From Macrostomum lignano (Eukaryota), in the NCBI GenBank assembly GCA_002269645.1, contig NIVC01003663.1, positions 1-43,474 on the forward strand: 43,474 nt of DNA, given 5' to 3'. Position 1 is the stretch's first letter; every line of letters begins with the position of its first letter. Below are positions 5,401 through 42,600 of this stretch, in pieces. A program made the translations under genes and the position numbers. The notes beneath the pieces were generated by a model, which was given only the letters and a program-made list of their open reading frames with translations, was not told where the DNA came from and made no database searches.

Positions 5401-7907
5401 AGTCGCGGAATCTCGGCCAACGAACAGGTTCCTGTTTCCAGACAGTCATTCAGCGATGGACTGCACTGATCTCGCTTGGCACTCGCGTCGAAAACCACTC
5501 GAACTTTGGTCGATTCAGCTTCAGGACGGATTACGGCTCGGTGGGGTAGGTAGTGGATGAGATCGCTGGTCCCATCTGGAGCTTCTTCGACTACGCCAGC
5601 TTCCTTCTGACTGGTCAGAATGCGGTGGTACTCCTGAAGTAGCGCAGGCTCACGACGCAGCCTCGTCAGATTGGTCTTTAGTCTCTTGAACGCTACCTCG
5701 AAGTTGTCGGGCAATCTTAATTCCTTTTTGGGAATCTTCCACGGCAGCTGAACTGAGTAGCGACCCTCTTGGAACTGGGCATTCAGAGTCAGTGGACGCT
5801 GATCAGGCTCGGCTGCACTTCTGATGCCGAGACCTTCTAAAGTCCAGAACGCCTCGATGGTGCTGCTGTCCAGACCTTTCTCCGCTCCTTGAGCACAGCA
5901 GAGAAGAACCTGCTCTGACCTGGTCTCTAGCTCACTTGCGGCGAACCCATCTGACAGTGACCCGCACAGCAACCAACCGAGCTGACTGGATACGGCAACT
6001 GGACCGGAGCCGACCTCTGAGCGAATCACTTGACCTGTGACGAGGTCGTAGAATTGGTCAGCTCCGATGAGGATACTGATCTCGGGATTCTGTTCACCAC
6101 CGATGTCCCAGTCTGCCATGTCGAGGTGTTGAAAGTGCTTCATGCACAAGCTGCTGACAACTGGCTGATGAGAGCAGATGTAAGGCACTGTGTTGGCGCG
6201 CACTGTGAACTGGGCGGTGCTGTCAGATTTCCGAAGCTTGAACTCGACCATCGCAGTCTGCAGCACCTTGGCCTCTGTGCCACCGAATGTTGTCACCTCC
6301 ATCGTCTCTCTGCCCATGACCTGGAGCCCCATCTTCTCAGCCAAGCTGGTCAAGATGAACGAACGGTTGCTTGCAGAGTCAAAGAGAATTCGCACCGGAG
6401 TCTCCTGATTGTTAACAGTCGAAATCAGTACAGCTCCCGCTGTTGGAAGGATCACTGTTTGAGCTTTTGTCACCATAGCCATGGTCTTCACTTCTTGACT
6501 CTTCACATTCTGTGCAGCAGCCTGCTCGGACTTCTTCCGGTCTTCTCCCACCTTTCCAAGTGTGGAGCCGGGTGCCTTCGGTCCATCCTTACCCAGCAGC
6601 TTCTCCATGCGTGCGCTACAGAGACTTGGGTGATGCTTCATCTGGCAGAATTCACATTGCTTCTTGTGGTAGCAGGTCTTGACGCTGTGTCCCTTGCAGA
6701 GACAGCTGAAGCAACGCCTCTGCTCCTTCAAAAACTGGAGTCGTGCCGCAACGTCTACCAGGCGAGTGCACTTCTCTGGAGCATGTTCAGTTTCGCAGAA
6801 GGGACAAGCCGTGCTGACCTTTTTGACCTTCGTGTGAAGCGCAGCCACTGTGCCGCCATCCCTTGTCTGTTTCTCACCAGCAGTCTTGGACGCTCCATTG
6901 GAACCGGACGTCTGCCCTCCAGCTCCAACGGCCGCCTCCTCCCGGACTAAAATCTCCATTTCCAAGACCTGCAGAAACTCCGTCACAGAATCTAAGCCAT
7001 TGCCATCCCTCATCTGCGACAAGCTGCTACCAAAGGAATAACCGACGGAAGCAATCCGAGCAGTTCTCAGCATCCCGAGACGAACGACTTCCGGCAGCTT
7101 CGCCAGCAAGTTGGGCAGCAACATGGACTCGTAAGATTCGACACTCACCCCGAGATTCGTCAGACTGCGGACATTTCCATTGACTTGGTCGTAGAAATTC
7201 CTCAGGTGCTGTGCCGACGAACTGGAGCAGGTCAGCACCGAGAACTTTGCCAGGTGCTCGCGCACGGCTCCGTTGCGGGATCCAAATCGTCGTTGCAGGT
7301 TGTCGATGGCGATATGGTAGTTGTCCTTCGTGATGTTGAGACCAGCGATCGAGTTTCGGGCTTCCCCAGACAGACACGACTGCAGGTAGCTGAATTTGTC
7401 GACGACACTCAGGCTCGGGTTGTCATGGATACTGGAGTTGAAGCGGTCCCAGAATTCCGTCCATTGGGTCCGATCGCCACTGAATGACGGTGGCGGCAGT
7501 TTTGGCAACCTGATGGCAGTCTGAGTCCTTGTCGTTGAAGAATTCTCTTCCGAAGACTTGGACGAAGTCGTCGTCTGTATGGCTGTATTCTGCAGCAGAT
7601 TTGTTGCCTGCGGCGTGCCGGTCCGCGCGGTCTGAAGCTCCTGGAGCCGTCTGGTGAGGTTCGAGATCAATTTGCCAGCCAGCAGGTCGTACTCCATTGT
7701 CGTCTCTGCTTCAGCCTGCACGTCCTTCTCGTCAACCTCCGCGGCGAGCTCTTCATCTGCTGCTTGGAGCTGCTGCTTCTTGAACCGTAGAGCCTCTAGA
7801 ACGCTGTCGATTTCATCTTCAGCAGCATCTGTTTTGAGCAGGTCTTCGGCTTTCTGTGCCAGTCTGGTGACCGTCGCTCGTAACACGCCTCTCTTCCTGG
7901 AGTCCAT
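2458..7907 (-). CDS. BEL/Pao Gag-Pol polyprotein, split by a 1-nt frameshift near 3801
   Basis: ORF 3702-7934 (first ATG 7907) plus ORF 2458-3780. Motifs: Gag core FSGDRTQWTEFWDRF; three Cys/His knuckles (CPFCETEHAPEKC, CFSCLCKGHSVKTC, CEFCQMKHHPSLC); protease LFDSASNRSFI; RT ADIEKAFLQI and YVDNL; RNase H HGFCDAS/ELLGAL/WTDS/NPADVASRG; integrase H-H-C-C, LDYCGP, SDNAKTF, GGFWERL. Confidence 0.97.
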
Positions 7908-7977
7908 GCTGTTGTTGAAAAATCGCTGAGTCACTGTAGCACTCTTGCGCTCACTGCTTGATTTTACTGTGATTTTG

Positions 7978-11106: not shown

Positions 11107-13402
11107 GTCAATACGTCGTGACCTCTCTCTCTCTCTCTCTCTCTCTCCTCTCTCCCCCTTTACCGGGAAATCAGTGAAGGAGGTTCCCCAGACTTAGAAG
11201 TGATGAGTGCAACTTGTTTGTGCTTGAGAACCAAAAACTGGTGGAGGATTTGACAACGGTACAGGTCAAAGGCAACCTAGAGGTACCAGAGACCAGAGCG
11301 ATTCAGGGGCTCAAGCGAACAGCTCCGTCGTGATAAAAAAGGCGGACAAAGGTAACGCAGTGGTCATCATGCACCCTAGGGATTACGAATTTGCAGCCTA
11401 CAACCAATTGCTTGACACTAATGCCTATCAACAGCTGGACTAGCCACTGCAACCCGAGACTGCGGAAATGATTAGGGGGATCTTCCTCGATTTATGTAAC
11501 AGAAAGTTCATAACTAAGAAACAGTTTTCTTTTCTTTGCCTTGGAGAGAACTTCTGTCCCCGGCATTTCTACCTGCTCCCAAAAAATCACAAGGACCCGG
11601 CCACCTCGCTGATCCACTTCCGGGTCCCAGCAGACAGACCTATTGTTAGCCCAAGCGCAACCCACTTTCGTTAAGGACTCCTATGACTTCAAAGCACACC
11701 TTATGGATAAAAGCTGCACGGAAGGTCCTTGCTCTGGCAACTTTTGATGTCCAGAGTCTGTACTTCATGATCCCCACAGACCACGTCGTTGCAGCGATCC
11801 AGGAATTCTTTAATCGACTCCCAGATCCCATTGGACCGGATGCTGAGATAATAAAGCTACTGGAACTGTGTTTATACAGGAATGACTTTGAATTCGACAA
11901 AATGATTTTTTACAACTTAGAGGCACAGTCTCGGGGCGCATAATTGCGCCCAGCTATGCATGTCTCTTCATGAGCCTCTGGGAGGAAACTGCCCTGAGAA
12001 CTGCTCTTTATAAGCCGAGCATCTATTCTAGGTACATAGATGATCTTTATTCACTGGGACCACCTGACTGAAGCTCTGACAGAATTTGTTCGACACCTGA
12101 ATCCCATCAACCCCAACATTAAACTCACAGTCAGCTCCTCATCGACTGAGGCCAGTTTCCTTGACATGACCATCAAGAAAGCTGAAAACCGCTTCACAAC
12201 ACAACTGTTTTCGAAAGAAACAGACACTCACAGATTGTTGCACCGACAGCCCTTCCATCCGTCACACACCTTCAAGGGGGTAGTAAAATCCCAAGTCCTT
12301 CGGTACGCCCGTATCTGTGATGACTACAAGTCTTTCAACGATGCTTTCAATTCTTTAAAATCGGAACTCAAGCAATTAGGCTACTCGAAGATTTTTCTTA
12401 GAAACTGCAAAAAGGAGGTCCTCAAACTCATGAACTGGACTGCAGGACCAATGACCAATCTGGGTCTGCTTCCCAAAGGGTTCCATCCCTGTGGGTCATC
12501 CCGCTGCAAATGCTGCACCCACTCACTGCATGCTCTCTCCGCCCAGGGACTGGGACCGGCTTCCGGTTTTTTAATCTCCCAGAGCCTGTCCTGTGGCTCC
12601 AAGAACATCATCTATGGCATCTCCAGTAACCAGTGCCACCCTGGGAAAATCCTCTATGTAGGTATGACTAGAAGAACAATGAGAGATAGAATGAACCAGC
12701 ACAGGTCAAATATTAACAGGAGAGTCTTTACTTCGGGGTCAGAGCACTTTCTCACCCCCAATCACTCGATTTCAAACTTTGTCACTATTGCCATTGAACA
12801 GGTTCTTAATAACAACAAAATCGAACTAAGGGTAGAAATCTGGATTGAAAAAACTGGGGACTGACAAACCGCCGGGTACGAACATCAGGGTTGACAATCA
12901 GATCTTCTCCGACCCATCCCACTGGTCCTTCCTTTTCACCCATCTACGGTCTGGCTCGCCAACGAGATTGCTAAGAACTTTGATAAACTGCAACACAAAC
13001 CAGGCTCCCGCATTCTGCCCGCATTTACACGGCAACGAAATTTACAGAGCCTCCTGGCTCCCAATAAGTCTAAGTCTCAGCCAGGAAACCAATGAATCAT
13101 TTTACCTATGGAACTACAATATTTATTCACTTTGTCCTTTATTTTATTCAAATTTCTTGAATTCAAGACTTCAAAAAATTCTTCAATACCTGCATTTCAT
13201 TTAATCGTATAGTAACTTTGAAAAAACAATTTTTAATATACTGCCGCCTAAACTTACTGGTTGAAAAGCCTCTGGGACAAGATAGAGCTAAACTGAACAG
13301 GGTTTTTAATGTACATCCTTCATATGTACAGCTGCTCATCAATTTTATCAGACTGAGAAAAATGATACTTTAAAGGCCAACTTGCATTGCACATTGATTT
13401 TT

Positions 13403-15030: not shown

Positions 15031-17708
15031 GAAATCTCAGGGTGAGGAGGGAATCTCAGGATGAGGGAATCTCAGGATGAGGAGGGAATCTCAGGGTGAG
15101 GGAATCTCAGGGTGAGGAGGGAATCCCAAGATGAGAAGGGAATCTCAAGGTGAGGAGGGAATCTCAAGATGAGGAGGGAATCTCAGGGTGAGGAGGGAAT
15201 CTCAGGATGAGAAGGGAATCTCAGGGTGAGGGAATCTCGGGGTGAGGAGGGAATCTCAAGATGAGAAGGGAATCTCAGGGTGTGGAGAAATCTCAGGATG
15301 AGGAGGGAATCTCAGGGTGAGGAGAGATGAGAAGGGAAGGGAAGGGAAGGATGAGAAGGGAAGGGAAGGGAAGGATGAGAAGGGAATCTCAGGGTGAGGG
15401 AATCTCGAGGTGAGGAGGGAATCTCGGGGTGAGGGAATCTCAGGGTGAGGGAATCTCAGGGTGAGGGAATCTCAGGGCGAGGGAATCTCGGGGTGTGGAG
15501 GGAATCTCAGGGTGAGGAGAGAATCTCTGGGTGAGGAGGGAATCTCAGGATGAGGAGGGAATCTCAGGGTGAAGGAATCTCAGGGTGAGGAGGGAATCCC
15601 AAGATGAGAAGGAAATCTCAAGGTGAGGAGGGAATCTCAAGATGAGGAGGGAATCTCAGGGTGAGGAGAAAATCTCAGGATGAGAAGGGAATCTCAGGGT
15701 GAGGGAATCTCGGGGTGAGGAGGGAATCTCAAGATGAGAAGGGAATCTCAGGGTGTGGAGAAATCTCAGGATGAGGAGGGAATCTCAGGGTGAGGAGAGA
15801 TGAGAAGGGAAGGGAAGGGAAGGATGAGAAGGGAAGGGAAGGGAAGGATGAGAAGGGAATCTCAGGGTGAGGGAATCTCGAGGTGAGGAGGGAATCTCGG
15901 GGTGAGGGAATCTCAGGGTGAGGGAATCTCAGGGTGAGGGAATCTCGGGGTGTGGAGGGAATCTCAGGGTGAGGAGAGAATCTCGGGGTGAGGAGGGAAT
16001 CTCAGGGTGAGGAGGGAATCTCAAGATGAGGAGGGAATCTCAAGGTGAGGAGGGAATCTCAAGATGAGGAGGGAATCTCAGAGTGAGGAGAAAATCTCAG
16101 GATGAGAAGGGAATCTCAGGGTGAGGGAATCTCAGTGTGAGGAGGGAATCTCAAGATGAGAAGGGAATCTCAGGGTGAGGAGAGAATCTCAGGATGAGAA
16201 GGGAATCACAGGTTGAGGAGGGAATCTCGGGGTGAGGAGGGAATCTCAGGATGAGGATGGAATCTCAGGGTGAGGAGGGAATCTCGGGGTGAGGAGGGAA
16301 TCTCAGGGTGAGGGAATCTCGGGGTGAGGGAATCTCAGGGTGAGGGAATCTCGGGTGAGGAGGGAATCTCAGGATGAGGATGGAATCTCAGGGTGAGGAG
16401 GGAATCTTGGGGTGAGGAGGGAATCTCAGGGTGAGGGAATCTCAGGGTGAGGGAATCTCAGGGTGAGGAGGGAATCCCAGGGTGAGGGAATCTCGGGGTG
16501 CGGAGGGAATCTCAGGGTGAGGAGAGAATCTCGGGGTGAGGAGGGAATCTCAGGGTGAGGAGGGAATCTCAGGATGAGGAGGGAATCTCAAGGTGAGGAG
16601 GGAATCTCAAGATGAGGAGGGAATCTCAAGGTGAGGAGGGAATCTCAAGATGAGGGAATCTCAAGGTGAGGAGGGAATCTCAAGATGAGGAGGGAATCTC
16701 AGAGTGAGGAGAAAATCTCAGGATGAGAAGGGAATCTCAGGGTGAGGGAATCTCGGGGTGAGGAGGGAATCTCAAGATGAGAAGGGAATCTCAGGGTGTG
16801 GAGGGAATCTCAGGGTGAGGAGGGAATCTCGGGGTGAGGAGGGAATCTCAGGGTGAGGAGAGAATCTCAGGATGAGAAGGGAATCTCAGGGTGAGGGAAT
16901 CTCGAGGTGAGGAGGGAATCTCAGGGTGAGGGAATCTCGGGGTGAGGAGGGAATCTCAGGGTGAGGGAATCTCGGGGTGAGGAGGGAATCTCATGATGAG
17001 GAGGGTATCTCAGGGTGTGGAAGGAATCTCAGGGTGAGGAGAAAATCTCGGGGTGAGGAGGGAATCTAAGGGTGAGGGAATCTCGGGGTGAGGAGGGAAT
17101 ATCATGATGAGGAGGGAATCTCAGGGTGTGGAGGGAATCTCAGGGTGAGGAGGGAATCTCGGGGTGAGGAGGGAATCTCAGGGTGAGGAGAGAATCTCAG
17201 GATGAGAAGGGAATCTCAGGGTGAGGGAATCTCGAGGTGAGGAGGGAATCTCAGGGTGAGGGAATCTCGGGGTGAGGAGGGAATCTCAGGGTGAGGGAAT
17301 CTCGGGGTGAGGAGGGAATCTCATGATGAGGAGGGTATCTCAGGGTGTGGAAGGAATCTCAGGGTGAGGAGAGAATCTCGGGGTGAGGAGGGAATCTAAG
17401 GGTGAGGGAATCTCAGGGTGAGGGAATCTCGGGTGAGGAGGGAATATCATGATGAGGAGGGTATCTCAGGGTGTGGAGGGAATCTCAGGGTGAGGGAATC
17501 TCGGGGTGAGGAGGGAATATCATGATGAGGAGGGTATCTCAGGGTGTGGAGGGAATCTCTGGGTGAGGAGAGATTCTCAGGATGAGGATGGAATCTCAGG
17601 GTGAGGAGGGAATCTCGGGGTGAGGAGGGAATCTCAGGGTGAGGGAATCTCGGGGTGAGGGAATCTCAGGGTGAGGAGGGAATCTCATGATGAGGAGGGT
17701 ATCTCAGG
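15031..17708. repeat. 2.7-kb G/A-rich satellite of 17-20-bp units (GAGGGAATCTCAGGGTGAG and variants)
   Basis: Read directly; internal block duplications with offsets of 473 bp and 330 bp. Confidence 0.98.
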
Positions 17709-17897
17709 CTGATTACCGAAGTAACATCCATTTCTTAAGTCTCAAGGCATTCGAAATAAAAAAGAGAATAGCTTCGCTCATTGAAACGATATTTTTCACT
17801 CATAAAGTGCATAACCGCAAAGTACATTTTGCGCTGACCTTTCTGTATTTTTTACGAACTTTTGCCACCACATGAATAATGTAATGCTTTAAAAATG

Positions 17898-20470
17898 CTA
17901 TTTAAACTTTTGCGACTTCACAAGGCCAGCCCGGATGCCAGACTTTTCACCCGAGTAGCGATTCACTTCCGGTCGAACTTCCGGCACCTGAGATCGACGT
18001 TTAATCATAGCTTTACGGAATTTGTCGCGCAGTTTCACGCGAGGATTGCTGTCACCCGGCTTGGCTTTCTTGCCGCCGCGAGGCCGGCGCTTGTGCAGAC
18101 GCACCGGCAGGTTCTTCTGCATCTCCCAGTAGATCGGGCGATGCTGCTGCTGCTGCTGCTGGCTCGTCTTGTCGTCGACGGCTTCTTCTTCTTCTTCTTC
18201 TTCAACAGCCGCCTCCAATTTAATTTTTCCAGATTTTTTCGATGACGATTTCTTATTAACACTACTGCTAGTAGTACTACTGGGGTTGGAGCTGATATCG
18301 ACTAAATTGCGTGTCGCATCTTCAGCTTGGCGAAGCAGTCGACGAATCGGATGCCGATGCAAGCCAGCCGACACAGTCGGATCTGCTCGCATTCTCAAAT
18401 AGGCGCACAACAATATATAGTGCCATTTGAGCACAGCCTGCTCATCTGTGAGCTCGGATTCCGCTAGGCCAACTAACGGTTTGAGTCTGTTCTCTAGTCG
18501 AGTCTTCTGCTCGTAGGCGCGTCGCATGTCGGGCCAACGGTTTGAGTCGCTTAGCAACAGGTGCTGCTCCAGAGACACACCCGGCGGCGGCCTCTCGTAG
18601 GCGGGCAGCTCAGTTGCCAGACGGACCAGCTGCTGCTGCTGCTGCGGTCGCTTTTTCAACGACTCTTTAGACGACAACGCTGTCGATGCGGCAGCAGTCG
18701 CCGATGTCGACGACACCGACGAAGGCAAATCCGACGGCAAACCGACGCCTAGTAAACGACGCCGCAGTCTCTCTCGTTCCTCGCGCATCAGCCTGGCCGT
18801 GCTGGCGTCTTCGCCACCTTCTATATCATCGTCTTCCTCTTCGCCGTCGGAGTCGCCTGCCGCGTAGCGATACCGTCGCGACGTCGACCACTGCCGGTTG
18901 GCCAGCTGCTCCTCGCTGTCTTCTTCTTTGTCTGCTTCGTCGTCGTCCACCAAATCTTCGGCGACCTCCTTGCGAAATTTTTGCAGCCGGGCTCGCTTCA
19001 AGATGTCGCGATACTGACCGACCATCTCGTCATCATCGTCTGCGGAGTTATCGGAGTCCAGGCCCACCGGGAGCAGCTCGGCGGCTGGCTGTTTGACTCG
19101 ACTTTTTCTGGACGCCTCCGCATGGCGGGACAGCTCGTCCAGCAGGATCTGGGCGGGTTTGGGGAATTGTGAATTTTGTTGGGTACTGAATCCTCCATCA
19201 GTGCTTGAGAATCTGGCTCTCCGCTCCCTCAGTGCTTGAGAATCTGCCTCTCCGCTCCTCCCTCAGTGCTTGAGAATCTGCCTCTCCGCTCCTCCCTCAG
19301 TGCTTGAGAATCTGCCTCTCCGCTCCTCCCTCAGTGCTTGAGAATCTGCCTCTCCGCTCCTCCCTCAGTGCTTGAGAATCTGCCTCTCCGCTCCTCCCTC
19401 AGTGCTTGAGAATCTGCCTCTCCGCTCCTCCATCAGTGCTTGAGAATCTGCCTCTCCGCTCCTCCATCAGTGCTTGAGAATCTGCCTCTCCAGTCAATCA
19501 GTGCTTGAGAATCTGCCTCTCCAGTCAATCAGTGCTTGAGAATCTGCCTCTCCAGTCAATCAGTGCTTGAGAATCTGCCTCTCCAGTCAATCAGTGCTTG
19601 GGAATCTGCCTCTCCACTCCTCCCTCAGTGCTTGAGAATCTGCGTCTCCAGTCAATCAGTGCTTGAGAATCTGCCTCTCCAGTCAATCAGTGCTTGGGAA
19701 TCTGCCTCTCCGCTCCCTCAGTGCTTGAGAATCTGCCTCTCCGCTCCCTCAGTGCTTGGGAATCTGCCTCTCCGCTCCCTCAGTGCTTGAGAATCTGCCT
19801 CTCCGCTCCCTCAGTGCTTGGGAATCTGCCTCTCCGCTCCCTCAGTGCTTGAGAATCTGCCTCTCCGCTCCCTCAGTGCTTGAGAATCTGCCTCTCCGCT
19901 CCCTCAGTGCTTGGGAATCTGCCTCTCCGCTCCCTCAGTGCTTGAGAATCTGCCTCTCCGCTCCCTCAGTGCTTGGGAATCTGCCTCTCCGCTCCCTCAG
20001 TGCTTGAGAATCTGCCTCTCCGCTCCCTCAGTGCTTGAGAATCTGCCTCTCCGCTCCTCCATCAGTGCTTGGGAATCTGCCTCTCCGCTCCCTCAGTGCT
20101 TGAGAATCTGCCTCTCCGCTCCCTCAGTGCTTGAGAATCTGCCTCTCCGCTCCTCCATCAGTGCTTGGGAATCTGCCTCTCCGCTCCCTCAGTGCTTGGG
20201 AATCTGCCTCTCCGCTCCCTCAGTGCTTGAGAATCTGCCTCTCCGCTCCCTCAGTGCTTGAGAATCTGCCTCTCCGCTCCTCCATCAGTGCTTGGGAATC
20301 TGCCTCTCCGCTCCCTCAGTGCTTGGGAATCTGCCTCTCCGCTCCCTCAGTGCTTGGGAATCTGCCTCTGTGCTCTAAAGGTGGGTAAATTAACATTACC
20401 AGCATGAAAAAAGAAGGCTCACCTTATCCTGATCCGCTTCAAAGTCGCGCTCAGAATCGCTTGAGTCGGC
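17898..20470 (-). CDS. UTP3: UTP3/SAS10 (SSU processome component), 2 identified exons, about 430 aa
   Basis: Exons 20423-20470 (ADSSDSERDFEADQDK; TTTTTCAG acceptor, GTGAG donor) and 17898-19148 (ILLDELS...), phase 0. Acidic N-terminus, central Sas10/Utp3/C1D-like region (..HRHPIRRLL), and C-terminal Sas10 domain NPRVKLRDKFRKAMIKRRSQVPEVRPEVNRYSGEKSGIRAGLVKSQKFK. The start is either ATG 20488 or a spliced-leader AUG. Confidence 0.92.
19199..20369. repeat. 31/34-bp minisatellite (CAGTGCTTGAGAATCTGCCTCTCCGCTCCCT) filling the UTP3 intron
   Basis: Read directly; it occupies about 1170 of the 1274-nt intron (19149-20422), with zoned unit variants. Confidence 0.98.
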
Positions 20471-21063: not shown

Positions 21064-21861
21064 TAAAGATCGGAAGCTGCTCAACACTAAGACCGGAAGC
21101 TATTCAAGACTAAGACCGAAAGCTGCTCAACACTAAAACCGGAAGCTATTCAAGACTAATACCGAAAGCGGCTCAACAATAAGACCGGAAGCTATTCAAG
21201 ACTAAGACCGGAAGCTGCTCAACACTAAGACCGGAAGCTATTCAAGACTAAGACCGGAAGCTGCTCAACACTAAGACCGGAAGCTATTCATGACTAAGAT
21301 CGGAACCTGCTCAACAATAAGACCGGAAGCTATTCATGACTAAGATCGAAACCTGCTCAACAATAAGACCGGAAGCTATTCATGACTAAGATCGAAACCT
21401 GCTCAACAATAAGACCGGAAGCTATTCATGACTAAGATCGGAGCCTGCTCAACAATAAGACCGGAAGCTATTCATGACTAAGATCGAAACCTGCTCAACA
21501 ATAAGACCGGAAGCTATTCATGACTAAGATCGAAACCTGCTCAACAATAAGACCGGAAGCTATTCATGACTAAGATCGGAACCTGCTCAACAATAAGACC
21601 GGAAGCAATTCATGACTAAGATCTGTACCTGCTCAACAATAAGACCGGAAGCTATTCATGACTAAGATCGGAACCTGCTCAACAATAAGACCGGAAGCTA
21701 TTCAACAGTAAGGCCGGAAGCTATTCAACAGTAAGACCGGAAGCTATTCAAGACTAAGACGGAAAGGTGTTCATGACTAAGACCGGAAGCTACTAAAACA
21801 AAGACCGGAAGCTATTCATGACCAAGAGCGGGAGCTATTTATGACTAAGACTAAGACTAAG
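21064..21861. repeat. 46-bp (2 x 23-bp) higher-order tandem repeat between the NAXD-like gene and UTP3
   Basis: TAAGACCGGAAGCTATTCA(A/T)GAC alternates with TAAGA(C/T)CGGAA(G/C)CTGCTCAACA(C/A). Confidence 0.96.
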
Positions 21862-21896: not shown

Positions 21897-22307
21897 TCAA
21901 TGCAGACAGTCGGCCTCAGGAAACAGCCGGCAGAACGCGGCTCCGATCTGTTCCACCGTGTCGGCCGCTATGGTTGCCCGCCTACGCGAAGCAAACGCTT
22001 GAGCTGCGCACCGTCTGGCCAGTGCGGCGGCTGCGTAAGCGGCTAGCAAAGCCGGATGACGCAGCATCGGCAAGTTCGCGCTACTACTCACAGTAGTATT
22101 ATTAGTAGTAGCAGTACGACCATCGGCGGCCGAGAAACACCAGTGAGAGAACACCAGCGCTAGGCCGGCTAGCAGGGCGCCCTGGCCTGAGCAGCGGCGG
22201 GAGCTGCCCTGCGTGTGGGGAGACGGGGGGCGGTTGCGGAGATTCGAACTCGCGACCTAACTAGGTGAAGAAGAGAACTCTGTCTACTTATCCATCTATC
22301 TATCTAC

Positions 22308-22346
<39 letters not shown>

Positions 22347-22404
22347 CCTACCTATCTATCTATCTATCTTTCTATCTATCTATCTATCTATCTTTCTAAT
22401 CTGC

Positions 22405-22451
<47 letters not shown>

Positions 22452-22481
22452 CCTATCTATCTATCTAATCTGCCTATCTGC

Positions 22482-22568
<87 letters not shown>

Positions 22569-22582
22569 ATCTGCCTATCTGC

Positions 22583-22656
<74 letters not shown>

Positions 22657-22665
22657 GTCTATCTT

Positions 22666-22721
<56 letters not shown>

Positions 22722-22841
22722 CCTATCTATCTATCTATCTAATCTGCTTATCTATCTATCTATCTATCTATCTACCTATCTATCTATCTATCTATCTAAT
22801 CTGCCTATCTGCCTATCTATCTATCTATCTATCTAATCTGC

Positions 22842-22888
<47 letters not shown>

Positions 22889-22889
22889 C

Positions 22890-22950
<61 letters not shown>

Positions 22951-24618
22951 CACCAATTTATCTATCATTCTACGATCTTGTATTTATATATTTATACAAT
23001 ATCTACCTTTGCCTATTTTAAGGTTAAGCACGGCTGGCAGCGGTTAGTACCTGTCTACGTAGGCTAAAAAACTCAAAACCTCAGGACTAGATTCGGATAA
23101 AGAAATAATCCTTAAGCTTAAGCACAAAGTTCCCCATCAGCTCACCTGCAGGGCGCATACTTCAGAATGATTATCAGACCCAGCCCCAGCAGCCACAACA
23201 TCTTCGCGACCTTTCAAAAGAATACAGACACCGCCAAGAGCTGCGGACAGTCGGCCAGCGGACGTCGGTGTCGAAGATGATGACGAAGCAATAGGTGGAG
23301 TCTGCGACTCGCAGAGCTGGCAGAATTCCAACCAGTTTGGCGTGAGAATGACGCGCTGGTTGCCACGGATAAGATTTGGATTCCGCGATACGGCTACCAG
23401 TGCGGACTGAAGGCGGCGTTTCAAATATGTCAATATTTCTATTTTTAAGCATCCATGACGTAACTAAACCAGCAGAAAAAAGGTCAACTCACCCCATCAA
23501 TTACAAGCGGCTGATTGAGAGCTTGAGCAGTTTCTATAGCCTGAATTAGACAGGGAAGATGGTGGGTGTTATTAAGGCATTGAGAACGGCGATTCTTGAG
23601 AAGGACTAGGGAGATTCTAAAGGGATTAAATGCAATTCAATAGAGGGGATAGGCAGTTCTAGAGAGGGGATTAAGGGAGATTCTATTGGGGGATTAAGGG
23701 CAATTCTAGAGGGATTAAGGGAGATTCTATAGAGGGGATCAGGGGAGATTCTAGAGAGGGGATTAAGGGCGATTCTAGAGACGAGGATTAAGGAAGATTT
23801 TAGAGACAGGGATTAAGGAAGATTTTAGAGAGGGATTAAGGGAGATTCTATAGAGAGGATAAGGGAGATTCTAGAGAAGGAATAAGGGAGATTCTAGAGA
23901 CGGGGATTAGGGAGATTCTATTGGGGGATTAAGGGCAATTCTAGAGGGATTAAGGGAGATTCTATAGAGGGGTTTAGGGGAGATTCTAGAGAGGGGATTA
24001 GGGGAGATTCTAGAGAGGGGATTAGGGGAGATTCTAGAGAGGGGATTAAGGGCGATTCTAGAGACGGGGATTAAGGAAGATTTTAGAGAGGGGTTAAGGG
24101 AGATTCTAGAGAGGGGATTAAGGGAGATTCTTGAGAGGGGATTAGGGGGATTTTAGAGAGAGGATTATGGGAGATTCTAGTGAGGGGATTATGGGAGATT
24201 CTAGTGAGAGGATTTTTGGAGATTCTAGATTGAAATTAAGGGCGATTCTCAAATCAGTCATTCAGCTACTCACATCAGTTGCCAACTGAATCGAATCCTC
24301 GCTGGAATCGAGCCCAGGACCAACCAATACAGCCTGGCAGCAGTCAGCCTGCAAGCATTGAATCAAGCGCTGCCGTCTTCGACCATTGTCGATGGCTCCT
24401 ACCTCCAACATCGCGGTCGGCTGCGGCCAGCAGCCGCGCAAAGCCGCCGCAGCCGCGGAGTCGGCGCAGACAACCTTCGCCTGATCAGCCCCAGCCCGCA
24501 GGGCAGCCAGCGCGGCCAGATGAGCAGGTCCCGGCTGACTGGCCGAGCCACCAACAATGCAGACGAGTCCGCCCGGATCGGACATGGCCGGGATGCACTG
24601 GGCAGCGGTGCCTACCAT
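21897..24618 (-). CDS. NAXD: Diverged NAXD/CARKD-like (YjeF C-terminal fold) protein, 4 exons, about 321 aa
   Basis: Exons 24274-24618, 23493-23540, 23146-23406 and 21897-22208, all phase 0 with AG/GTGAG sites. Motifs: [74 protein letters not shown]...[11 protein letters not shown]. Orthology versus paralogy is unresolved. Confidence 0.88.
22286..22951. repeat. (TATC)n / (GATA)n microsatellite filling the last NAXD-like intron
   Basis: Read directly; interrupted by TACC and AATCTGCC variants. Confidence 0.98.
23590..24250. repeat. Degenerate 24-26-bp minisatellite (GGGAGATTCTAGAGAGGGGATTAA) filling NAXD-like intron 1
   Basis: Read directly. Confidence 0.95.
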
Positions 24619-25284
24619 CGAATACTTGGACTACTGTGCTTAAGAAGTGAGTTTGTTGTCATCAAGCCAGATGCGAGTTCTACCCTGAAGTGCTCCGCAT
24701 TATGCAGCAGAGACCGGCGCTGTCAGGCGTTCAGCCTGGCTGACGGTCCGTGCCAGCTGTTCGTGTTCGACAAGTGCAGCAAGTCGGTGAGGAACTGCGG
24801 CTGCTCCAGGAGAGGCCGGGTGTTTGTGAAGCAGCAGCCGGGACTCGAGGCGGGCGCGCTGTGTCCGTCTGGCTACGGAGACGACCTGTGCGGAGTGAAG
24901 TACAAGCTGTTCAACGACTCAGGAAGTTGGAAGCAAAGCAGAGAAAAGTGCGAGTCGGAGAGCGGCCCGGTCATCATGGCAGATGTGGTGGACGCTACCG
25001 AGATGCACCATATTGAGATGCTTCATGCGAAGTACAGTTTTGGCAAGTCGTTCTGGCTCGGCGGTTTCCAGACTGAGGACAGTGCAGAGCCGCTCGAAGG
25101 CTGGCATTGGATTGCCTGCAATCTTGAGGTGGCCAGAACTCTTTGGAGTCAATCGGAGCCAAGCAACACGGGAAATGACGAGAATGTGATTTTGCGATGG
25201 TCAGCCAATCCGAATCTAAGTGACGGACGCATGGAAATGAATGAAGTGTCGGCCGGTCTGTGCGAATGCGTTTTTCCGTTTTAA
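24520..25284 (+). CDS. PAN/apple-like + C-type lectin-like protein; 5' end unresolved
   Basis: PAN-like STLKCSALCSRDRRCQAFSL..PCQL followed by CTLD CPSGY..YKLF..SWKQSREKCES..MADV..FWLGG..WHWI..WSQSEPSN..EN..LCEC. The only upstream in-frame ATG (24520) lies inside NAXD-like exon 1. Confidence 0.8.
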   Translation: MSRSRLTGRATNNADESARIGHGRDALGSGAYHRILGLLCLRSEFVVIKPDASSTLKCSALCSRDRRCQAFSLADGPCQLFVFDKCSKSVRNCGCSRRGRVFVKQQPGLEAGALCPSGYGDDLCGVKYKLFNDSGSWKQSREKCESESGPVIMADVVDATEMHHIEMLHAKYSFGKSFWLGGFQTEDSAEPLEGWHWIACNLEVARTLWSQSEPSNTGNDENVILRWSANPNLSDGRMEMNEVSAGLCECVFPF

Positions 25285-25646: not shown

Positions 25647-26347
25647 ATTGATGGTTTAAAACTTGTACATAGTAATCAATTTTTTGATACAGTATTGGTT
25701 GGGCAAAGTGCATATCAGTTTCAAGCCAGTCCGGTCATTGACAAATCAGCTAAAAAATTCTGAGTTGACGGCTAGCCCCACCCATCGCAAGTTGGTTATT
25801 TAACGTGGGCTGTTTGGTCTTAATGTACAGGGCTTCTAATAGGCAGAGCATGTGATCTCTATTACAAAAATCAATAGCCTTTATCATTTCGTGTGGTTCA
25901 GCCTCACAACAAGAATTGCAGGTTAGCAGGTGTTCGTTAATAGCAGAGTTTTTTAGCCAGTGCTCTCTGACCCTCGTGTATAAGTGTCGTTTAGTTTTTC
26001 CTATGTAGGAGATGCTCTGGTCCTCAGAGCAAACAAATTTATACACGACACCAGCCGCGAGAGGACGTGGAACACTGGATTTCAACTTGCAGACAAACTT
26101 AGCAATCTTCTCGGTGCGAAACACAACACGGATTTGAGTGTTTAAGTCTTTACGGAGCAGCTTTTCTAACTTCTTTTTAAACTCTATAGCTCTATAAACC
26201 AACTTGCGATGGGTGGGGCTAGCCGTCAACTCAGAATTTTTTAGCTGATTTGTCAATGACCGGACTGGCTTGAAACTGATATGCACTTTGCCCAACCAAT
26301 ACTGTATCAAAAAATTGATTACTATGTACAAGTTTTAAACCATCAAT
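25647..26347 (-). mobile_element. 5'-truncated Penelope-like element (GIY-YIG end) with an inverted copy of its 3' end
   Basis: GIY-YIG GVVYKFVC..SYIGKTKRHLYTRVREH..INEH..LLEALYIKTKQPTLN. A 151-bp perfect inverted repeat spans 25647-25797 and 26197-26347. Confidence 0.92.
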
Positions 26348-27149: not shown

Positions 27150-28469
27150 TCGATCCTACATTGCTAGCCTGATCGTGCTACTTTTGGTTACGGCCTTGTG
27201 CATCTGCACAGTCGGATTCTTCGGTGTAGAGTCTAACAAATACCTGAGGATAAAGTGCAGCAAATCGACAAATGAGGTAGCATCGACGCCTTACGGACTA
27301 CTTAGCACTTTAATCTGCTGGATTACTTTCTCGCTTTTTTGTCTAGTGAGCACAGCTTTGGGCCTAGCTCGAAAGGAGATCTGGAGGTAAGCATGATAAT
27401 AGAGATATCATTACTCACATATTACATTTTCGGGGCAGATTACCTCAGCAGTTATGGCATCTGCCTCTCGTGCCTGTGCATGTATTTTTATGCTGCTCAA
27501 GGGTTAGCAAAATTAGCATAACGGCTTGCTCCTCGCTGGCTGCCGGTTTACTGTCACTTTTTCGATTTGCTGCAGTGCCCGAAGCCAGCTCCTGCAAGCA
27601 AACTGATGCGTGATGCAAACTTCTGTTTATTTAGGTACAAGCTCGGCTATCCCGCTTGGCCAAGAAGAAGCTACTCGGATCTAATTTCCTGGTTGGCCCC
27701 ATTAATTTTGGCGCTGCCAGTCTCGTGTTTTTTGTACTGGCTTCATCTAAATACAACTACAAGCTGCAATATGTTTGGCACCATGATCTATGCAACAAGT
27801 GGATGCTGCACCATTTTGCTGGTACTCTCCAGTCTAGCTTTCATTCTCTGCTACTTGCAAATGTGTTGGCCGATAACAACTATCACAACTAGCTTCTACA
27901 ACAGCATTGGCACTTTCACATTATTCTCACTTGTCTACATCATACTGACGGCTATTTTCACGCGATTGTTTCAAGCTAGTTCGACGTTCGCCGCGGCGCA
28001 AGCTGCTGCCAGTAGTAATTCTTCGGACAGCAGCAACACATTCTTCAGAGCTTATTACACCACCTTCTTGGTGTCACTGAACATCATTGATCCGACGGTA
28101 TTCAGGCCGGGCGAAGACAGAGCTGACCTGAGCCTGCTGCATATGGCCTACATTCTTGCGGTACCTGTATTGTTTATCAACTTTGTTGTCGGAATTTTAT
28201 CTTCAGTGGTGAATCGAGTCACGGAGAACAGTGTTGAGCACCGCTACTGGCTAATGCTTACTGTTGCGGAGTACTTCGAGCGAACCTTTGTCGTGCTCTT
28301 CCGACTGAGAACTGCGCTGTTCGGACGGAAAAAGCTCACTTTGACTGTGTGCAAGCCTTTAAGTCCGGACAGCAAGCTCATCGCGTTCAATAATTACACT
28401 CTCGACTCGGTTTGGCCGCCATGCGGACAGACAGAAGTCTGCGAACTCGAGTCTACAGAAGAAATTTGA
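27150..28469 (+). CDS. TRP-channel-like 6-TM pore module (last two exons; upstream exons not found)
   Basis: Exons 27150-27386 and 27635-28469 join in phase 2 (GTAAGC...TTTATTTAG). Six hydrophobic helices, a pore-helix-like FFRAYYTTFLVSLNI, and S6/TRP-helix-like LFINFVVGILSSVVNRVTENSVEHRYWLMLTVAEYFERTF, which resembles the TRPV5/6 S6-TRP helix. Confidence 0.68.
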
Positions 28470-33671: not shown

Positions 33672-36600
33672 CGATGAGTAGTTGAGAGAATTGCTCCTCA
33701 TCTGAGGCAGCCTCCTGCTCAACAATTGTATCCTTTGGCAGCCCGTCAACATACAGAATGTAGGAGCTTGGCATTCTTTAGATTGGGCGAGTTGGCGTTG
33801 GTTACAGTGAGTTAGTCTTAAATTGTAGCATTCTGTGAAGAGTTTCCCCACTTGCAATATGGGTTCCTATTTTCGTTTTTTTCTATAGCCGTCCTGCATC
33901 TACATTGGACGGTAGGCTGGCTGTTCGAGAATTCCCGAGGCTTAATAAACTAGTTAACTTTTTCAAAATTGTTTTTGAAGATTAGGAGCGTTCTTCCTAA
34001 TGCGAAAGAGTACCATTTTCTGTCAAGAGGTGGAGAGCACACTGGTCATGAGGAGGAGAGCACACTGTTTGGTCATGAGGAGGAGATCACACTGTTTGGT
34101 CATGAGGAGGAGATCACACTGTTTGGTCATGAGGAGGAGATCACACTGTTTGGTCATGAGGAGGAGATCACACTGTTTGGTCATGAGGAGGAGATCACGC
34201 TGTTTGGTCATGAGAAGGAGATCACACTGTTTGGTCATGAGGAGGAGATCACACTGTTTGGTCATGAGGAGGAGATCACACTGTTTGGTCATGAGGAGGA
34301 GATCACACTGTTTGGTCATGAGGAGGAGATCACACTGTTTGGTCATGAGGAGGAGATCACACTGTTTGGTCATGAGAAGGAGATCACACTGTTTGGTCAT
34401 GAGGAGGAGATCACACTGTTTGGTCATGAGGAGGAGATCACACTGTTTGGTCATGAGGAGGAGATCACACTGTTTGGTCATGAGGAGGAGATCACACTGT
34501 TTGGTCATGAGGAGGAGATCACACTGTTTGGTCATGAGGAGGAGAGTACACTGTTTGGTCATGAGGAGGAGATCACACTGTTTGGTCATGAGGAGGAGAT
34601 CACACTGTTTGGTCATGAGAAGGAGATCACACTGTTTGGTCATGAGGAGGAGATCACACTGTTTGGTCATGAGGAGGAGATCACACTGTTTGGTCATGAG
34701 GAGGAGATCACACTGTTTGGTCATGAGGAGGAGATCACACTGTTTGGTCATGAGGAGGAGATCACACTGTTTGGTCATGAGAAGGAGATCACACTGTTTT
34801 GGTCATGAGGAGGAGATCACACTGTTTGGTCATGAGGAGGAGATCACACTGTTTGGTCATGAGGAGGAGATCACACTGTTTGGTCATGAGGAGGAGATCA
34901 CACTGTTTGGTCATGAGGAGGAGATCACACTGTTTGGTCATGAGGAGGAGAGTACACTGTTTGGTCATGAGGAGGAGAGCACACTGTTTGGTCATGAGGA
35001 GGAGAGCACACTGTTTGGTCATGAGGAGGAGAGCACGCTGTTTGGTCAATAGGTGGACGCGTGTGCCATTGTGACTGATGTGTTAAGGGATCTGACCTAG
35101 AGTTTAATTTTGTCTATAACTCCAACTAATCTTGATACAACTAGCTGTCTCTGTACACAGAAAGCTGCAATTGGCAATCTGAAATTTACTTGCTAATGGA
35201 AACCGAGTGCCATCCGGTATCGAACTGGTAGAGCTGACGCCTCGACTGGACCACCTGACCGTCGCTGAACTCTACCGACAGGTGTCCGGAAAAGCGATCA
35301 ACGGTCAGGTGCAAATACCGGTCTCCATAGGAGCCCAGACCGGGCCCTCCGAGCAGCAGAAGAGTGGCCAATCTCGACGCGATACCATCAAAATTGGACG
35401 CCAGTTTTGCGTAGAAATGAACTCGGAATGACAATGAGAAATTTGATGTGCTCAAACTGGAACAAATCATATATATTAAATGGCTAAGGTGCATTTAGAG
35501 TCGAACATAAAATAGACTGTCAATTAGCTACAAAAGGCAGTTCACACGAATCAGCTTCCGTAATAAGAGGTCCCAAACCGTCTAATGATTAAGTTCTTCA
35601 TAAGTCGCAGGTGCGAGTTTTACAATGACGCGGTGAGAGAAACATGAAGCTTAAAAAAGAGGCTCTTCTACACTCAAAGGAGCAGCGCATATGGTTTTGC
35701 ACAATGGCTGACAGAAAGACGGCTGTTGTTAATAGTTAGAAAAAATGTAGCTAGCTATTATAGAATGGACGGCTTAAAACTTCCTTAAATAAAGTAAGAT
35801 TCTTGACTCTGCATTTGACTCAGCTCTGCTGCTGACAATGCAAACATGAGCACGTCGTATGGCGTTTTGTCTATTTTTTTAAATAGGCACACCAACTATT
35901 TTGTACTAAGCGTGTGTAGGTTGTGTGTAGATTGCTTCGCGCAGAAGTGGATCAAGACTTTGTGTTTAGTTCAGCATCATCCAGTGTCTCTCCATGCTGC
36001 TTTGTCATCCAGTTTCAAGCCCTGTTGTTGTTGAGTTAGCATCATAGCCAGCAAGGTGGCAAGCAGTCATGCCTATTCGGTTGTCCCTGAACACACACAG
36101 GAGCATATTACCCTTCCCAGGAGCATATTACCCTTCCCAGGAGCATATTACCCTTCCCAGGAGCATATTACCCTTCCCAGGAGCATATTACCTTTCCCAG
36201 GAGCATATTACCCTTCCCAGGAGCACACACATACGCTCACACGCACTGCAACATTTATTTGTTGATCTGGGGCTCTGTCTAGAAGGGTTTAATTTGTTGC
36301 TGCTCATAATTTTTCTGAATGTTTCTCGTGCTGCCAGTACAATTTTTTTCACTGCTTTTTCCGTTCGTCATTTGCAGTTGTTTCTCTTGCATCCTTCATA
36401 GTGCATCATTTTGTATTTTACAAAATCCTGAATCCCGATCTAGAATGGAACTCACCTGTTCATTAGCGCTGGACTCTTGTACAACAGGTAGCCTCGACCT
36501 CGAAATCTCGGCGCACTGATGTGGCGCTTGTCTCGGTCTGGGCGGAATGATGTGAGATCGAGTTCTTTTTCGACAAGTGCTCGAGTTCAATTATTTGTTT

Positions 36601-39603: not shown

Positions 39604-42600
39604 ATGCCCAGATCTTCGATGATGAGGCGTGACCGTCTGAGGACCAACCCGGCGGGTGGGTCCAATGATGATTTAACCACACTCACGCAAAACAGTGATC
39701 CTAACCTGCACATCGTGCAGATTAATCTGCACCACGCGGTCGCAGCCTCCAGCAGCCTCACCGACACCCTCGATGGCACCGGTGTTGACATCTACCTCAT
39801 CCAGGAGCCTTACACCGTGAGAGGTAAGCCCACCCTGCTGCCGAAAGGCTATCAGATCCTCTTCCTCTCTGGAGGGGAAACCCCTAGGGCCATTGCTCTG
39901 GTCAAGTACGAGCTCGCAGCCATGCTCATGCCGATGTTTTGCAATAAAGACATCTGTACCTTCACCGTGAACGGGATGATTTTCTCATCCGTGTACATGG
40001 ACATTCAGGATGAACTTCCGTCACCCCTCCTGCAGGATCTCGCAAACTTTTGTATCATCGAGAACCGGAACCTCATTATTGGTTGCGACGCTAATGCTCA
40101 CAACACTGCGTGGGCTAGCAGTAACACTAACCTCAGAGGTAGTATGCTTATTGATTTCATTAACACCTCGAATTTGCATATTTGCAACTTGGGGCGTAAA
40201 CCCACCTTTGCGAATGCTAGCAGGAAAGAGGTCATTGATCTCACCCTTGCGTCCAGTAGCATCCTTAATCGGATTCAAAATTGGAGGGTCAGAGACGACA
40301 TCCCCTCGCTCTCGGACCATTTCTACATCCATTTCAGCGTCACAGCTGGCGGCGCTCGCGTCACCAAGGCGAACCGTCCCAATTTAAAAAGGGCGGACTG
40401 GACTGGCTTCAGAAGGGACCTTGAGTCTCTGATCAGCAGAGAACCGGCCGATGACCTGGAAGGCTGCGATGATATTCCGAGCATTGAAGCACGCTGCAAC
40501 AAACTTGTCGAGCTGCTTAATGCGGCCACGATCAAGAACGCTCCTCCGATTGTCAGTAGAAAGAAGTACTCACCTTGGTGGAACAAGGAGCTCACCCGCT
40601 TAAAAAAGGCCTCCCGTCGGCTGCATCGGATTGCCAACCGGAACAACACCCAGAAGACTGGGAGAACTACCACTCTGCTTTGAGAATCTACAAGAGTTGC
40701 ATCCGGAAGGCCAAAAAGGACACCTGGAAGGCCTTCTGCGCCGGTTTAGAGGGCCAGCATCCTACTGCCCGGCTGGTCAAGTCCCTCAGGCATGACAACC
40801 TCGCCCAGTGTAACTCCCTCCTCCATTTGGATGGCAACTATTCCAGAACCGCCGAGGAATCCCTCAATCTGCTTTTCTCAGCTTGTTTCCCCACATGCGA
40901 GCATCCTGAGCAAATCGTTGCTGATCACAACCCAAGAGATCGACAGCTTTTCGAGCAGTGCGCCACCAAGAGCTTAATTCAGCTGGCCGTCAACACTTTT
41001 AAGCCTTTCAAAGCCCCCGGCATTGACAATATCGCCCCCTGTGTTCTCCAGGAAGCGGTTAAGCTGCAGAGCTTCTCTGCCTTTTTCTCTAAGCTCATCA
41101 TTGACTGTTTCACCACTGGGTACATTCCCACTATCTGGAGGACCGCTCGGGTGGTCTTCATCCCCAAGCCTGCCAAAGGCGACTATACTAATGTGAAATC
41201 TTTCCGCCCCATCAGCCTTACATCCTTCTGCATTAAGCTGATGGAGAGACTCATCTTGTGGAGGCTGCGCGACTGCGAGTTAAGGACGGCACCCATAAGT
41301 AAGCACCAATTCGCCTTCCAGCCAGGTAAAACCACCGAGCACGCTTTGCATGTTATTACCTCAGCCATTGAGAAAGCTATCCTGAGTAAGCAGATTGCCT
41401 GTGGGCTTTTCTGCGATATCGACGGGGCCTTCAATAACGTTTTGTTTGGCTCCTTCAGTGACTCCCTTTTGCAGAAAAAGGTCCGACCCAGCATTGTGCG
41501 TTGGATCGACTTTATGATCCGGAACAGGAAGGTGACTTCCTCCCTCATGGATGCCACCTGCACTCACACGGTTACTAAGGGCGGAGCCCAAGGTGGAGTG
41601 CTCACCCCGCTGCTCTGGAATCTCGTGATGGACGAGCTCCTGACGGCTGACGTCCCCAGCAGCATAGTCAAGGCTGGCTACGCTGATGATGTCGCTGCTA
41701 TTGTCAGTGGCCCTGACACCAGTACCCTCCGAAGCTTAATGCAGCAGTTCGCCGATAAGGCGCAAGCCTGGGCTACCCGGCACGGCCTAACCATTAGCAC
41801 CGCTAAGACGGTGTCCATTATCTTCACCAGGAAGCGGAAGTGGAGCATGCGGAACCTCACCATCTACGGTAAGGACATACCCTTAGTCAAGGAAACTAAG
41901 TATCTAGGTGTGACGCTCACCCACGATCTGCGTTGGACCAAGCACGCTGACAATGTCATCGGGCGCGCCAGGCGCTGCTTTGCGCAGGTGAGGAGAGCCA
42001 TCGGGCCTACTTGGGGTCTTTCTCCCAAGACGGTCAGATGGATTTACACCGGCATCGTTCGGCCCAGTATCACCTACGCGTGTGTTATCTGGTCCAGTGC
42101 GTTGGAGTTGAAGACTGTACGGGATCGGTTGTACCAGCTGCAGGGTAACATCTGCCGAGCCATCACCGGTGCGTATCCATCCACCCCTTACGAGGGGCTC
42201 AACACCATCCTCAGCATGCCTCCGCTGCATTTGTTCATTAGAGCTGAGGCGATGAAGGGCGCCGCGCGTCTCATCTGTGATAAATTTATTGCTAACACGC
42301 CCTCGGGCTTCATGCCTGAGAAGACTCTTTTCCCACATCTGGACTATATCCGTCGCGATCTTCAACGCATCCACCTCAATTTAGACGAGGTGGACTGCAG
42401 ATCCCCCACTCTCATCCTCAGGAGGGGCTTCAAGTGTACTCTTCCACCGAGAGGGAGTCACCCGCTAGACGTGGGCATCAACCGGAGAAGCCAGGGTATT
42501 CACTGCTTCACTGACGGATCCCTGCGTGACGGTCTCGCTGGTGCAGGCATTGCCATTTTCCACAAGGGTGAAGCGATCTTACAAGAGAGTCTTCATCTTG

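Follow-up and report, generated by a model that had tools for sequence, protein, structure and literature searches.

The contig NIVC01003663.1 of Macrostomum lignano (assembly Mlig_3_7, GCA_002269645.1), which we analyzed over its entire length of 43,474 bp and refer to as the window, carries on its minus strand a gene related to NAXD, the ATP-dependent NAD(P)HX dehydratase. On balance we favor the view, with moderate confidence, that this gene is a copy of a lineage-specific, fast-evolved NAXD paralogue working as a non-catalytic pseudoenzyme that may still bind nucleotide. The worm's own NAXD would have been duplicated at the DNA level, and the duplicate then evolved fast. It keeps the fold and the C-terminal motifs of the nucleotide side (NXXE, KGxxD, and most of the glycine-rich anion hole) and has lost the Asp of GXGD (to Ala), the HKG motif, and G-A (to G-P); much of the conservation on the N-terminal substrate side is rewritten. 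Such a protein would have lost the ability to phosphorylate or dehydrate NAD(P)HX and would be non-catalytic, possibly a binder of adenine nucleotides (ATP/ADP).

Structure of the gene and predicted fold of its product

The NAXD-like gene consists of four exons separated by GT-AG introns, and its 966-nt open reading frame (ORF) encodes 321 amino acids and ends with a TGA stop codon at 21899–21897. Exon 1 (24274–24618; codons 1–115) contains the segment devoid of HKG, the SQPGPAH motif, the rewritten IKSYSPELIVHP region, and GPGLDS, and its product showed 100% protein identity to the UniProt fragment P0156. Intron 1 (23541–24273), filled by a 24-bp minisatellite (23608–24229), is followed by exon 2 (23493–23540), whose 48 nt encode 16 amino acids and match the canonical exon 2 in size and phase, and by the 86-nt intron 2 (23407–23492). 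Exon 3 (23146–23406) carries TPNWLE (the NXXE motif) and KGRED, intron 3 (22209–23145) contains a (TATC)n/(GATA)n microsatellite (22289–22966), and exon 4 (21897–22208) encodes the glycine-rich loop (22208–22176) and the C-terminus and includes the stop codon. A 46-bp tandem repeat of 17 copies (21066–21851) begins approximately 45 nt past the stop codon.

A reading of this stretch from the letters alone (hereafter the sequence-only reading) had taken the product for a NAXD homologue, and this was borne out: the protein matched Pfam PF01256 (Carb_kinase, NAD(P)H-hydrate dehydratase) with E=4e-30 and 105.5 bits against a cut-off of 27, and its nearest solved relative was 6efw, an ATP-dependent NAD(P)HX dehydratase (E=5e-24). 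The C-terminal LFPEAD is common to the NAXD-like protein and the canonical M. lignano NAXD. The AlphaFold (AF2) model was confident (predicted local distance difference test score, pLDDT, 84.5; predicted template modeling score, pTM, 0.88) and weak only at residues 66–69 and in an inserted loop at 251–263. Foldseek comparison of the model gave template modeling (TM) scores of 0.84–0.85 to 6efw/6efx and 0.64–0.69 to bacterial structures. As judged from the model, the ribokinase-like YjeF_C fold is retained by the paralogue.

Motifs altered and retained

Conservation was assessed in an alignment with 147 canonical family representatives, and residues were counted column by column (at the Ala of TGAP, for example, 131 relatives were compared). 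Among the canonical proteins 66 columns were conserved to at least 80%, of which the paralogue keeps 45 and alters 21. The altered columns are K and G of HKG; Y, T, A, and P of EYTGAPY; seven positions of IKSYSPELIVHP; G and R of GPGLGR; the second D of IDADG; and R161, G210, G225, and D229.

In place of the HKG segment, the minus strand reads IPAMSDPGG (24594–24568), without H, K, or R, and these three residues are absent from the first 30 positions of the protein altogether; the HKG Lys is conserved in 98% of the relatives. SQPGPAH stands in place of EYTGAPY (24540–24520), and the Pro that it puts at the 98% conserved Ala of TGAP was found in only one of 131 relatives. Further along, IKSYSPELIVHP is replaced by a 14-residue stretch (24441–24400), GPGLGR by GPGLDS (24321–24304), and IDADG by IDGSA, which spans intron 2. 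Within the glycine-rich anion-hole loop, Ser225 (22190–22188) takes the place of a Gly present in 95% of the relatives (Ser in four of 147). The loop ends in CSGQGA, where Ala229 (GCC, 22178–22176) replaces the GXGD Asp found in 147 of 147 relatives. When checked on the minus strand, all the motif readings made from the letters alone (HKG gone, SQPGPAH, GPGLD, IDGSA, and GQGA with GCC) proved correct. Ala229 with its GCC codon was repeated at two further loci of the assembly and in UniProt models from the independent, older ML2 assembly, and hence the codon is not an assembly error.

The kept columns comprise GG, GAD, GPGL, LTPN..E (N155, E158; TPNWLE at 23343–23326), and KG..D (K196, G197, D200; KGRED at 23214–23200), as well as G219, R222, R223, C224, G226, Q227, G228, L231, G233, W241, and positions of the C-terminal helix. 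The claim that the ATP-binding segments are preserved thus held for KGRED and most of the glycine-rich loop, but not for position 225 of that loop. GPGLG and IDADG had been read correctly as altered, but they are conserved in eukaryotic NAXDs only. In alignments to bacterial proteins of solved structure, B. subtilis YxkO, a characterized ADP/ATP-dependent dehydratase, reads GPGLP and LDAGA, and S. mutans SMU.573 reads GPGLA and IDGSA. Since bacterial YjeF_C proteins vary in this way, the losses that count across the family are those of the HKG Lys, the G-A Ala (to Pro), and the GXGD Asp.

The losses are clustered and non-random, as the sequence-only reading had proposed. They affect 14 of the 25 conserved columns in the first 75 residues and 7 of the 41 elsewhere (Fisher P=0.002, for a cut placed post hoc). 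In the ribokinase fold the N-terminal half is the substrate side and the C-terminal half the nucleotide side, a split that would agree with the UniProt/HAMAP binding-site annotation.

Consequences of losing the GXGD aspartate

YjeF_C is a member of the ribokinase superfamily. In this superfamily the Asp of GXGD is the catalytic base (PMC6429617, PMC7948494), and its replacement in E. coli Pfk-2 (D256N) lowered kcat 15,000-fold and left the Km for either substrate unchanged (PMC6429617). The sequence-only reading had assigned this Asp to substrate binding, which was mistaken; since the residue is the catalytic base, Ala229 is expected to abolish phosphotransfer itself, beyond a mere substrate contact. 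Judging from these motifs, the paralogue is not likely to have retained kinase activity and would at most bind nucleotide.

We therefore consider it highly improbable that the protein continues to work as an NAD(P)HX dehydratase, say as an isoform of one tissue or compartment in which the substitutions are tolerated. Such an isoform would fit the Pfam match and the automatic naming in UniProt, and both IDGSA and GPGL followed by a residue other than Gly resemble bacterial family members, but it lacks three residues at the same time, namely the invariant Asp, the lysine of HKG, and the alanine of G-A, and the analogous mutation in Pfk-2 nearly eliminates turnover. The UniProt entries A0A1I8GF72, A0A1I8JBX3, A0A1I8HNG7, and A0A1I8FLL3 are automatically named as the active enzyme. 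This name is probably wrong, because the catalytic Asp is missing.

Canonical NAXD and origin of the paralogue

The sequence-only reading had asked whether the genome also has a canonical NAXD. Such a gene was found separately at two loci (L001 and L005; PAA81138.1 and PAA71525.1), and its motifs are complete (HKG, EYTGAPY, GPGLGR, IDADG, and GGQGD). The window protein is only 40–45% identical to it. Since the genome holds a separate canonical NAXD, the window gene is a paralogue and not the sole NAXD of the organism, and since the two coexist, the paralogue is not the organism's repair enzyme.

The canonical gene shares introns 1 and 2 in position and phase, and the exon between them is likewise 48 nt long, which indicates duplication at the DNA level. 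Intron 3 occurs in the paralogue only; the canonical gene has none at that site. Among the 147 representatives, the one closest to the paralogue was M. lignano NAXD (p-distance 0.535 versus at least 0.593 for all others), and the two paired in 96 of 100 neighbor-joining bootstraps. Since the split, the paralogue has accumulated 0.69 substitutions per site and the canonical gene 0.20, a 3.4-fold difference, and the paralogue branch was the longer one against 126 of 126 outgroups. Word-index and exhaustive searches of representative proteins returned only M. lignano copies above approximately 45% identity. On these distances and branch lengths the paralogue is a lineage-specific duplicate that afterwards evolved fast.

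The paralogue and NAXD/CARKD (PF01256; 6efw/6efx and YxkO, 3rph) are thus alike in fold (TM 0.85), Pfam domain, and, in the worm's NAXD, intron positions, and the paralogue keeps NXXE, KGxxD, GPGL, GG, most of the glycine-rich loop, and the C-terminal helix region. Unlike them, it has Ala for the GXGD Asp, a deleted or replaced HKG, G-P, a rewritten IKSYSPELIVHP, G225S, and a 3.4-fold longer branch.

Further copies and selection

The genome of M. lignano is highly redundant as a result of hidden polyploidy. The downstream, same-strand neighbor of the NAXD-like gene in the window is Sas10/UTP3 (PAA50344.1; 17898–20470, minus strand), and with this gene as an anchor further copies of the paralogue were recovered. 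They lie at L003 (NIVC01001426.1) and L004 (NIVC01001186.1), on large contigs of 291 kb and 342 kb, respectively, and each is a complete four-exon gene beside Sas10 with every deviant motif present. The paralogue is therefore known in at least three copies, and the pairing with Sas10/UTP3 is kept at all three loci. All three are free of stops and frameshifts and have kept their splice sites. Intron 3 measures 0.94 kb in the window and at L003, and 4.8 kb at L004, where repeats have expanded. More locus copies are hinted at by the Sas10 locus tags Mlig025692g4, g6, and Mlig008641g3. Within the Sas10/UTP3 span of the window lies a 31-bp minisatellite of 37 copies (19193–20369).

We compared the coding sequences of the L004 and window copies, which differed by 14 synonymous and 6 non-synonymous substitutions over 254 synonymous and 700 non-synonymous sites (dS 0.057, dN 0.0086). 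The resulting dN/dS ratio was 0.15 (binomial P=6e-5, or approximately 1e-3 with the share of non-synonymous sites lowered to 0.65), and the ratio between the two canonical NAXD copies was 0.19. The coding sequence of the paralogue is under purifying selection. When the canonical coding sequence was allowed to diverge neutrally to 50% amino acid identity, 5 of 1000 simulated runs remained free of stops; these runs included substitutions only and ignored indels.

A rival explanation is that the gene is a decaying duplicate, i.e. a young unprocessed pseudogene in a redundant, hidden-polyploid genome whose frame is intact by luck. The loss of catalytic and substrate motifs would be expected of such a gene, as would the missing GenBank gene call at all three loci, the lack of a native 5' end in the window copy (see below), and the fragmentary or frame-shifted UniProt models from the older assembly. 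The frameshifts in these models, however, stem from that error-prone assembly and are absent from Mlig_3_7. The low dN/dS, similar to that of the canonical gene, the three ORFs free of lesions, the few stop-free runs even with indels ignored, and the 45 of 66 conserved columns kept in a confidently predicted fold strongly disfavor decay, in agreement with the sequence-only reading, and we regard this explanation as quite unlikely.

L003 and L004 showed zero differences over codons approximately 166–241 and the first 150 nt of intron 3, with a dS of approximately 0.06 in the flanking exon sequence. This difference-free tract suggests gene conversion. Intron divergence was also tried as a neutral yardstick and was of no help, since the divergence of the unique pieces is only approximately 1.3%, with no difference at all over one stretch of 150 nt, probably through gene conversion.

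The 5' end of the window copy

The window copy was found to be truncated. The ORFs of L003 and L004 extend 39 nt farther upstream (MSCTLLTSDLLLS-TAAQC...), and their ATG is preceded by a TAA in the same frame. The native 5' sequence MSCTLLTSDLLLS, which is also seen in UniProt models, was not found anywhere in the window, and this empty search led to the discovery of a junction at 24611–24612, where the similarity to the intact copies stops. The window and L003 (NIVC01001426.1) are 99.2% identical from an abrupt onset at 24611 down to approximately 8846, and this part of the contig is therefore a near-identical duplicate or haplotype of the NIVC01001426.1 region. A TCC/TCG difference at a Ser codon 48 codons past the junction is specific to one copy. 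Above 24611, the DNA showed no similarity to the upstream regions of L003 or L004, although these two are homologous to each other. In the window copy, the native start, the first 13 codons, and the upstream region are replaced by unrelated DNA. The ATG at 24618–24616 (MVG) accordingly lies in foreign DNA and is in frame by chance, and the window copy lacks its native promoter. The proposal that the frame and all splice sites are preserved thus stood for the reading frame and splice sites of all three copies, but did not anticipate the truncation at 24611.

The window copy is either a very recent duplicate or haplotype rearranged inside native codon 13, or part of a chimeric small contig, and the junction may mark the edge of a segmental duplication, a rearrangement, or a chimeric join made in assembly. 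The window copy itself may be silent, with the intact members of the family at NIVC01001426.1 and NIVC01001186.1.

We also considered whether the paralogue as a whole is an assembly or annotation artefact, with erroneous bases at the decisive codons or a gene model that is itself chimeric. The window contig is small (43 kb) and rich in repeats, and the sequences that meet at 24611 could have been joined chimerically. However, the exons and the deviant codons recur at two loci on the 291-kb and 342-kb contigs and in models from an independent assembly, and an artefact could account only for the 5' junction of the window copy, not for the paralogue. The chance that it explains the findings is, in our view, very slight.

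A 308-codon ORF on the plus strand (24358–25284) runs antisense to exon 1 and crosses the junction. A PAN and C-type-lectin identity for it was not upheld: the part beyond the junction gave only sub-threshold PAN matches (E=0.01), and there was no lectin match. This ORF may be a piece of a different gene, joined head-to-head, or it may be open by chance, the DNA being GC-rich.

Annotation and possible role of the paralogue

The GenBank annotation of M. lignano dropped transcripts that overlapped repeat annotations (PMC5730564). Since the introns of the NAXD-like gene are full of repeats, its missing gene calls are weak evidence against a functional gene. The UniProt models, which derive from the older ML2 assembly, are fragments or carry frameshifts, and some are fused to Sas10; in A0A1I8F7T6, for instance, Sas10 is fused with frame-shifted NAXD-like pieces. 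Polycistronic trans-spliced units occur in M. lignano, and co-transcription of the NAXD-like gene with Sas10, its same-strand neighbor, is conceivable. No mention of CARKD/NAXD in Macrostomum was found in papers or supplements.

NAXD is an extremely conserved and normally single-function repair enzyme, the loss of which causes a lethal human encephalopathy, and the family forms oligomers. Since the family is oligomeric, the paralogue may partner the canonical NAXD. A non-catalytic paralogue might thus act as a regulatory, 'prozyme-like' partner of the canonical enzyme; it might instead bind nucleotide in some new role, or have a new ligand. Dead paralogues that partner active relatives are known from trypanosomatids, namely the AdoMetDC prozyme and the deoxyhypusine synthase paralogue (PMC5201418, PMC3663545). 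Like these, the M. lignano paralogue arose within one lineage by duplication of an oligomeric metabolic enzyme, lacks catalytic residues, and is maintained by selection. They offer a plausible model for its action, the resemblance being one of logic only. Other parallels concern the re-use of the fold. One case in the literature is Edc3, whose YjeF_N domain comes from NAXE, the partner repair enzyme, and is re-used without catalysis, in a different subfamily and with different partners. The AF2 model also gave weak fold matches to the plastid RNA polymerase (PEP) chains 9epc_S and 8qma_I. We take these chains to be plant FLN1/FLN2 (PAP6), presumably non-catalytic members of the ribokinase superfamily; they too would re-use a ribokinase-type fold without catalysis, again in a subfamily and with partners different from those of the NAXD-like paralogue.

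Among the papers searched, none linked NAXD or YjeF_C with a pseudoenzyme. We put forward only tentatively, and as less probable than not, that the paralogue is the first pseudoenzyme of the YjeF_C fold, i.e. a maintained, catalytically dead, adenine-nucleotide-binding protein that acts as a regulatory subunit in a hetero-oligomer or as a sensor of nucleotides or damaged cofactors.

Alternatively, the paralogue could be a neofunctionalized enzyme that acts on another substrate, such as another damaged metabolite, or by another chemistry, using residues other than the GXGD Asp and with the rewritten N-terminal pocket as a new substrate site. Purifying selection and the kept Mg-nucleotide motifs NXXE and KGxxD are compatible with this alternative, the changes are gathered on the acceptor-substrate side instead of being evenly spread, and a 3.4-fold acceleration after duplication is what a shift in function would be expected to produce. 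Against it, the general base, an Asp in all 147 relatives and critical in the superfamily, has become an Ala, which is unable to act as a base; no candidate replacement residue was identified at the level of the sequence; and the basic residues for a phosphorylated ligand (the HKG Lys and R105 of GPGLGR) are gone. We therefore regard a new enzymatic activity as unlikely and prefer the pseudoenzyme reading.

Several points nevertheless weigh against the pseudoenzyme reading. The selection test draws on only 20 substitutions between two homeologues, and the divergence is patchy, with a difference-free tract. Nucleotide binding is read from motifs only, with G225S in the anion-hole loop, and the division into a substrate side and an ATP side comes from general knowledge of the fold and from binding-site annotation. 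The GenBank annotation calls no NAXD-like gene at any of the three loci, and an exact look-up in the protein collection found no exact full-length product. Finally, no orthologue was found in another species, and the paralogue is known from one species only.

If the pseudoenzyme reading is correct, a maintained NAXD-fold duplicate that keeps the nucleotide-side motifs without the catalytic base and the substrate motifs would show that non-catalytic or new roles are within reach of this fold. The paralogue would also serve as a natural experiment on which residues of NAXD matter, and the case illustrates that in M. lignano genes of this kind are multiplied and rearranged through hidden polyploidy. 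Three things limit the significance: the confinement to one species, unproven expression, and the fact that dead paralogues are common as a class.

Other features of the contig

Rfam and tRNA scans of the window gave no matches, and a 'TRP-channel-like' reading of the ORF at 27567–28469 received no support from Pfam. Two transposable elements with long ORFs were found. A BEL/Pao-type long terminal repeat (LTR) retrotransposon on the minus strand (2458–7934) has long gag-pol ORFs with Peptidase_A17, RVT_1, rve, DUF1759/DUF1758, and DUF5641 domains and looks recently active. A non-LTR retrotransposon on the plus strand (39604–43058) encodes endonuclease, reverse transcriptase, and RNase H in two long ORFs. 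GIY-YIG nuclease ORFs were detected at 12040–12864 (plus strand; E=0.0016, below the Pfam cut-off) and at 25750–26331 (minus strand; E=2e-7); the two are possibly remnants of Penelope-like elements.

A G-rich 19-bp satellite of approximately 147 copies (15033–17712) explains the strong GC-skew peak at 14–18 kb. A 27-bp repeat of 37 copies, 97% identical, occupies 34043–35048 and is open in several frames, giving rise to spurious ORFs of 250–350 amino acids.

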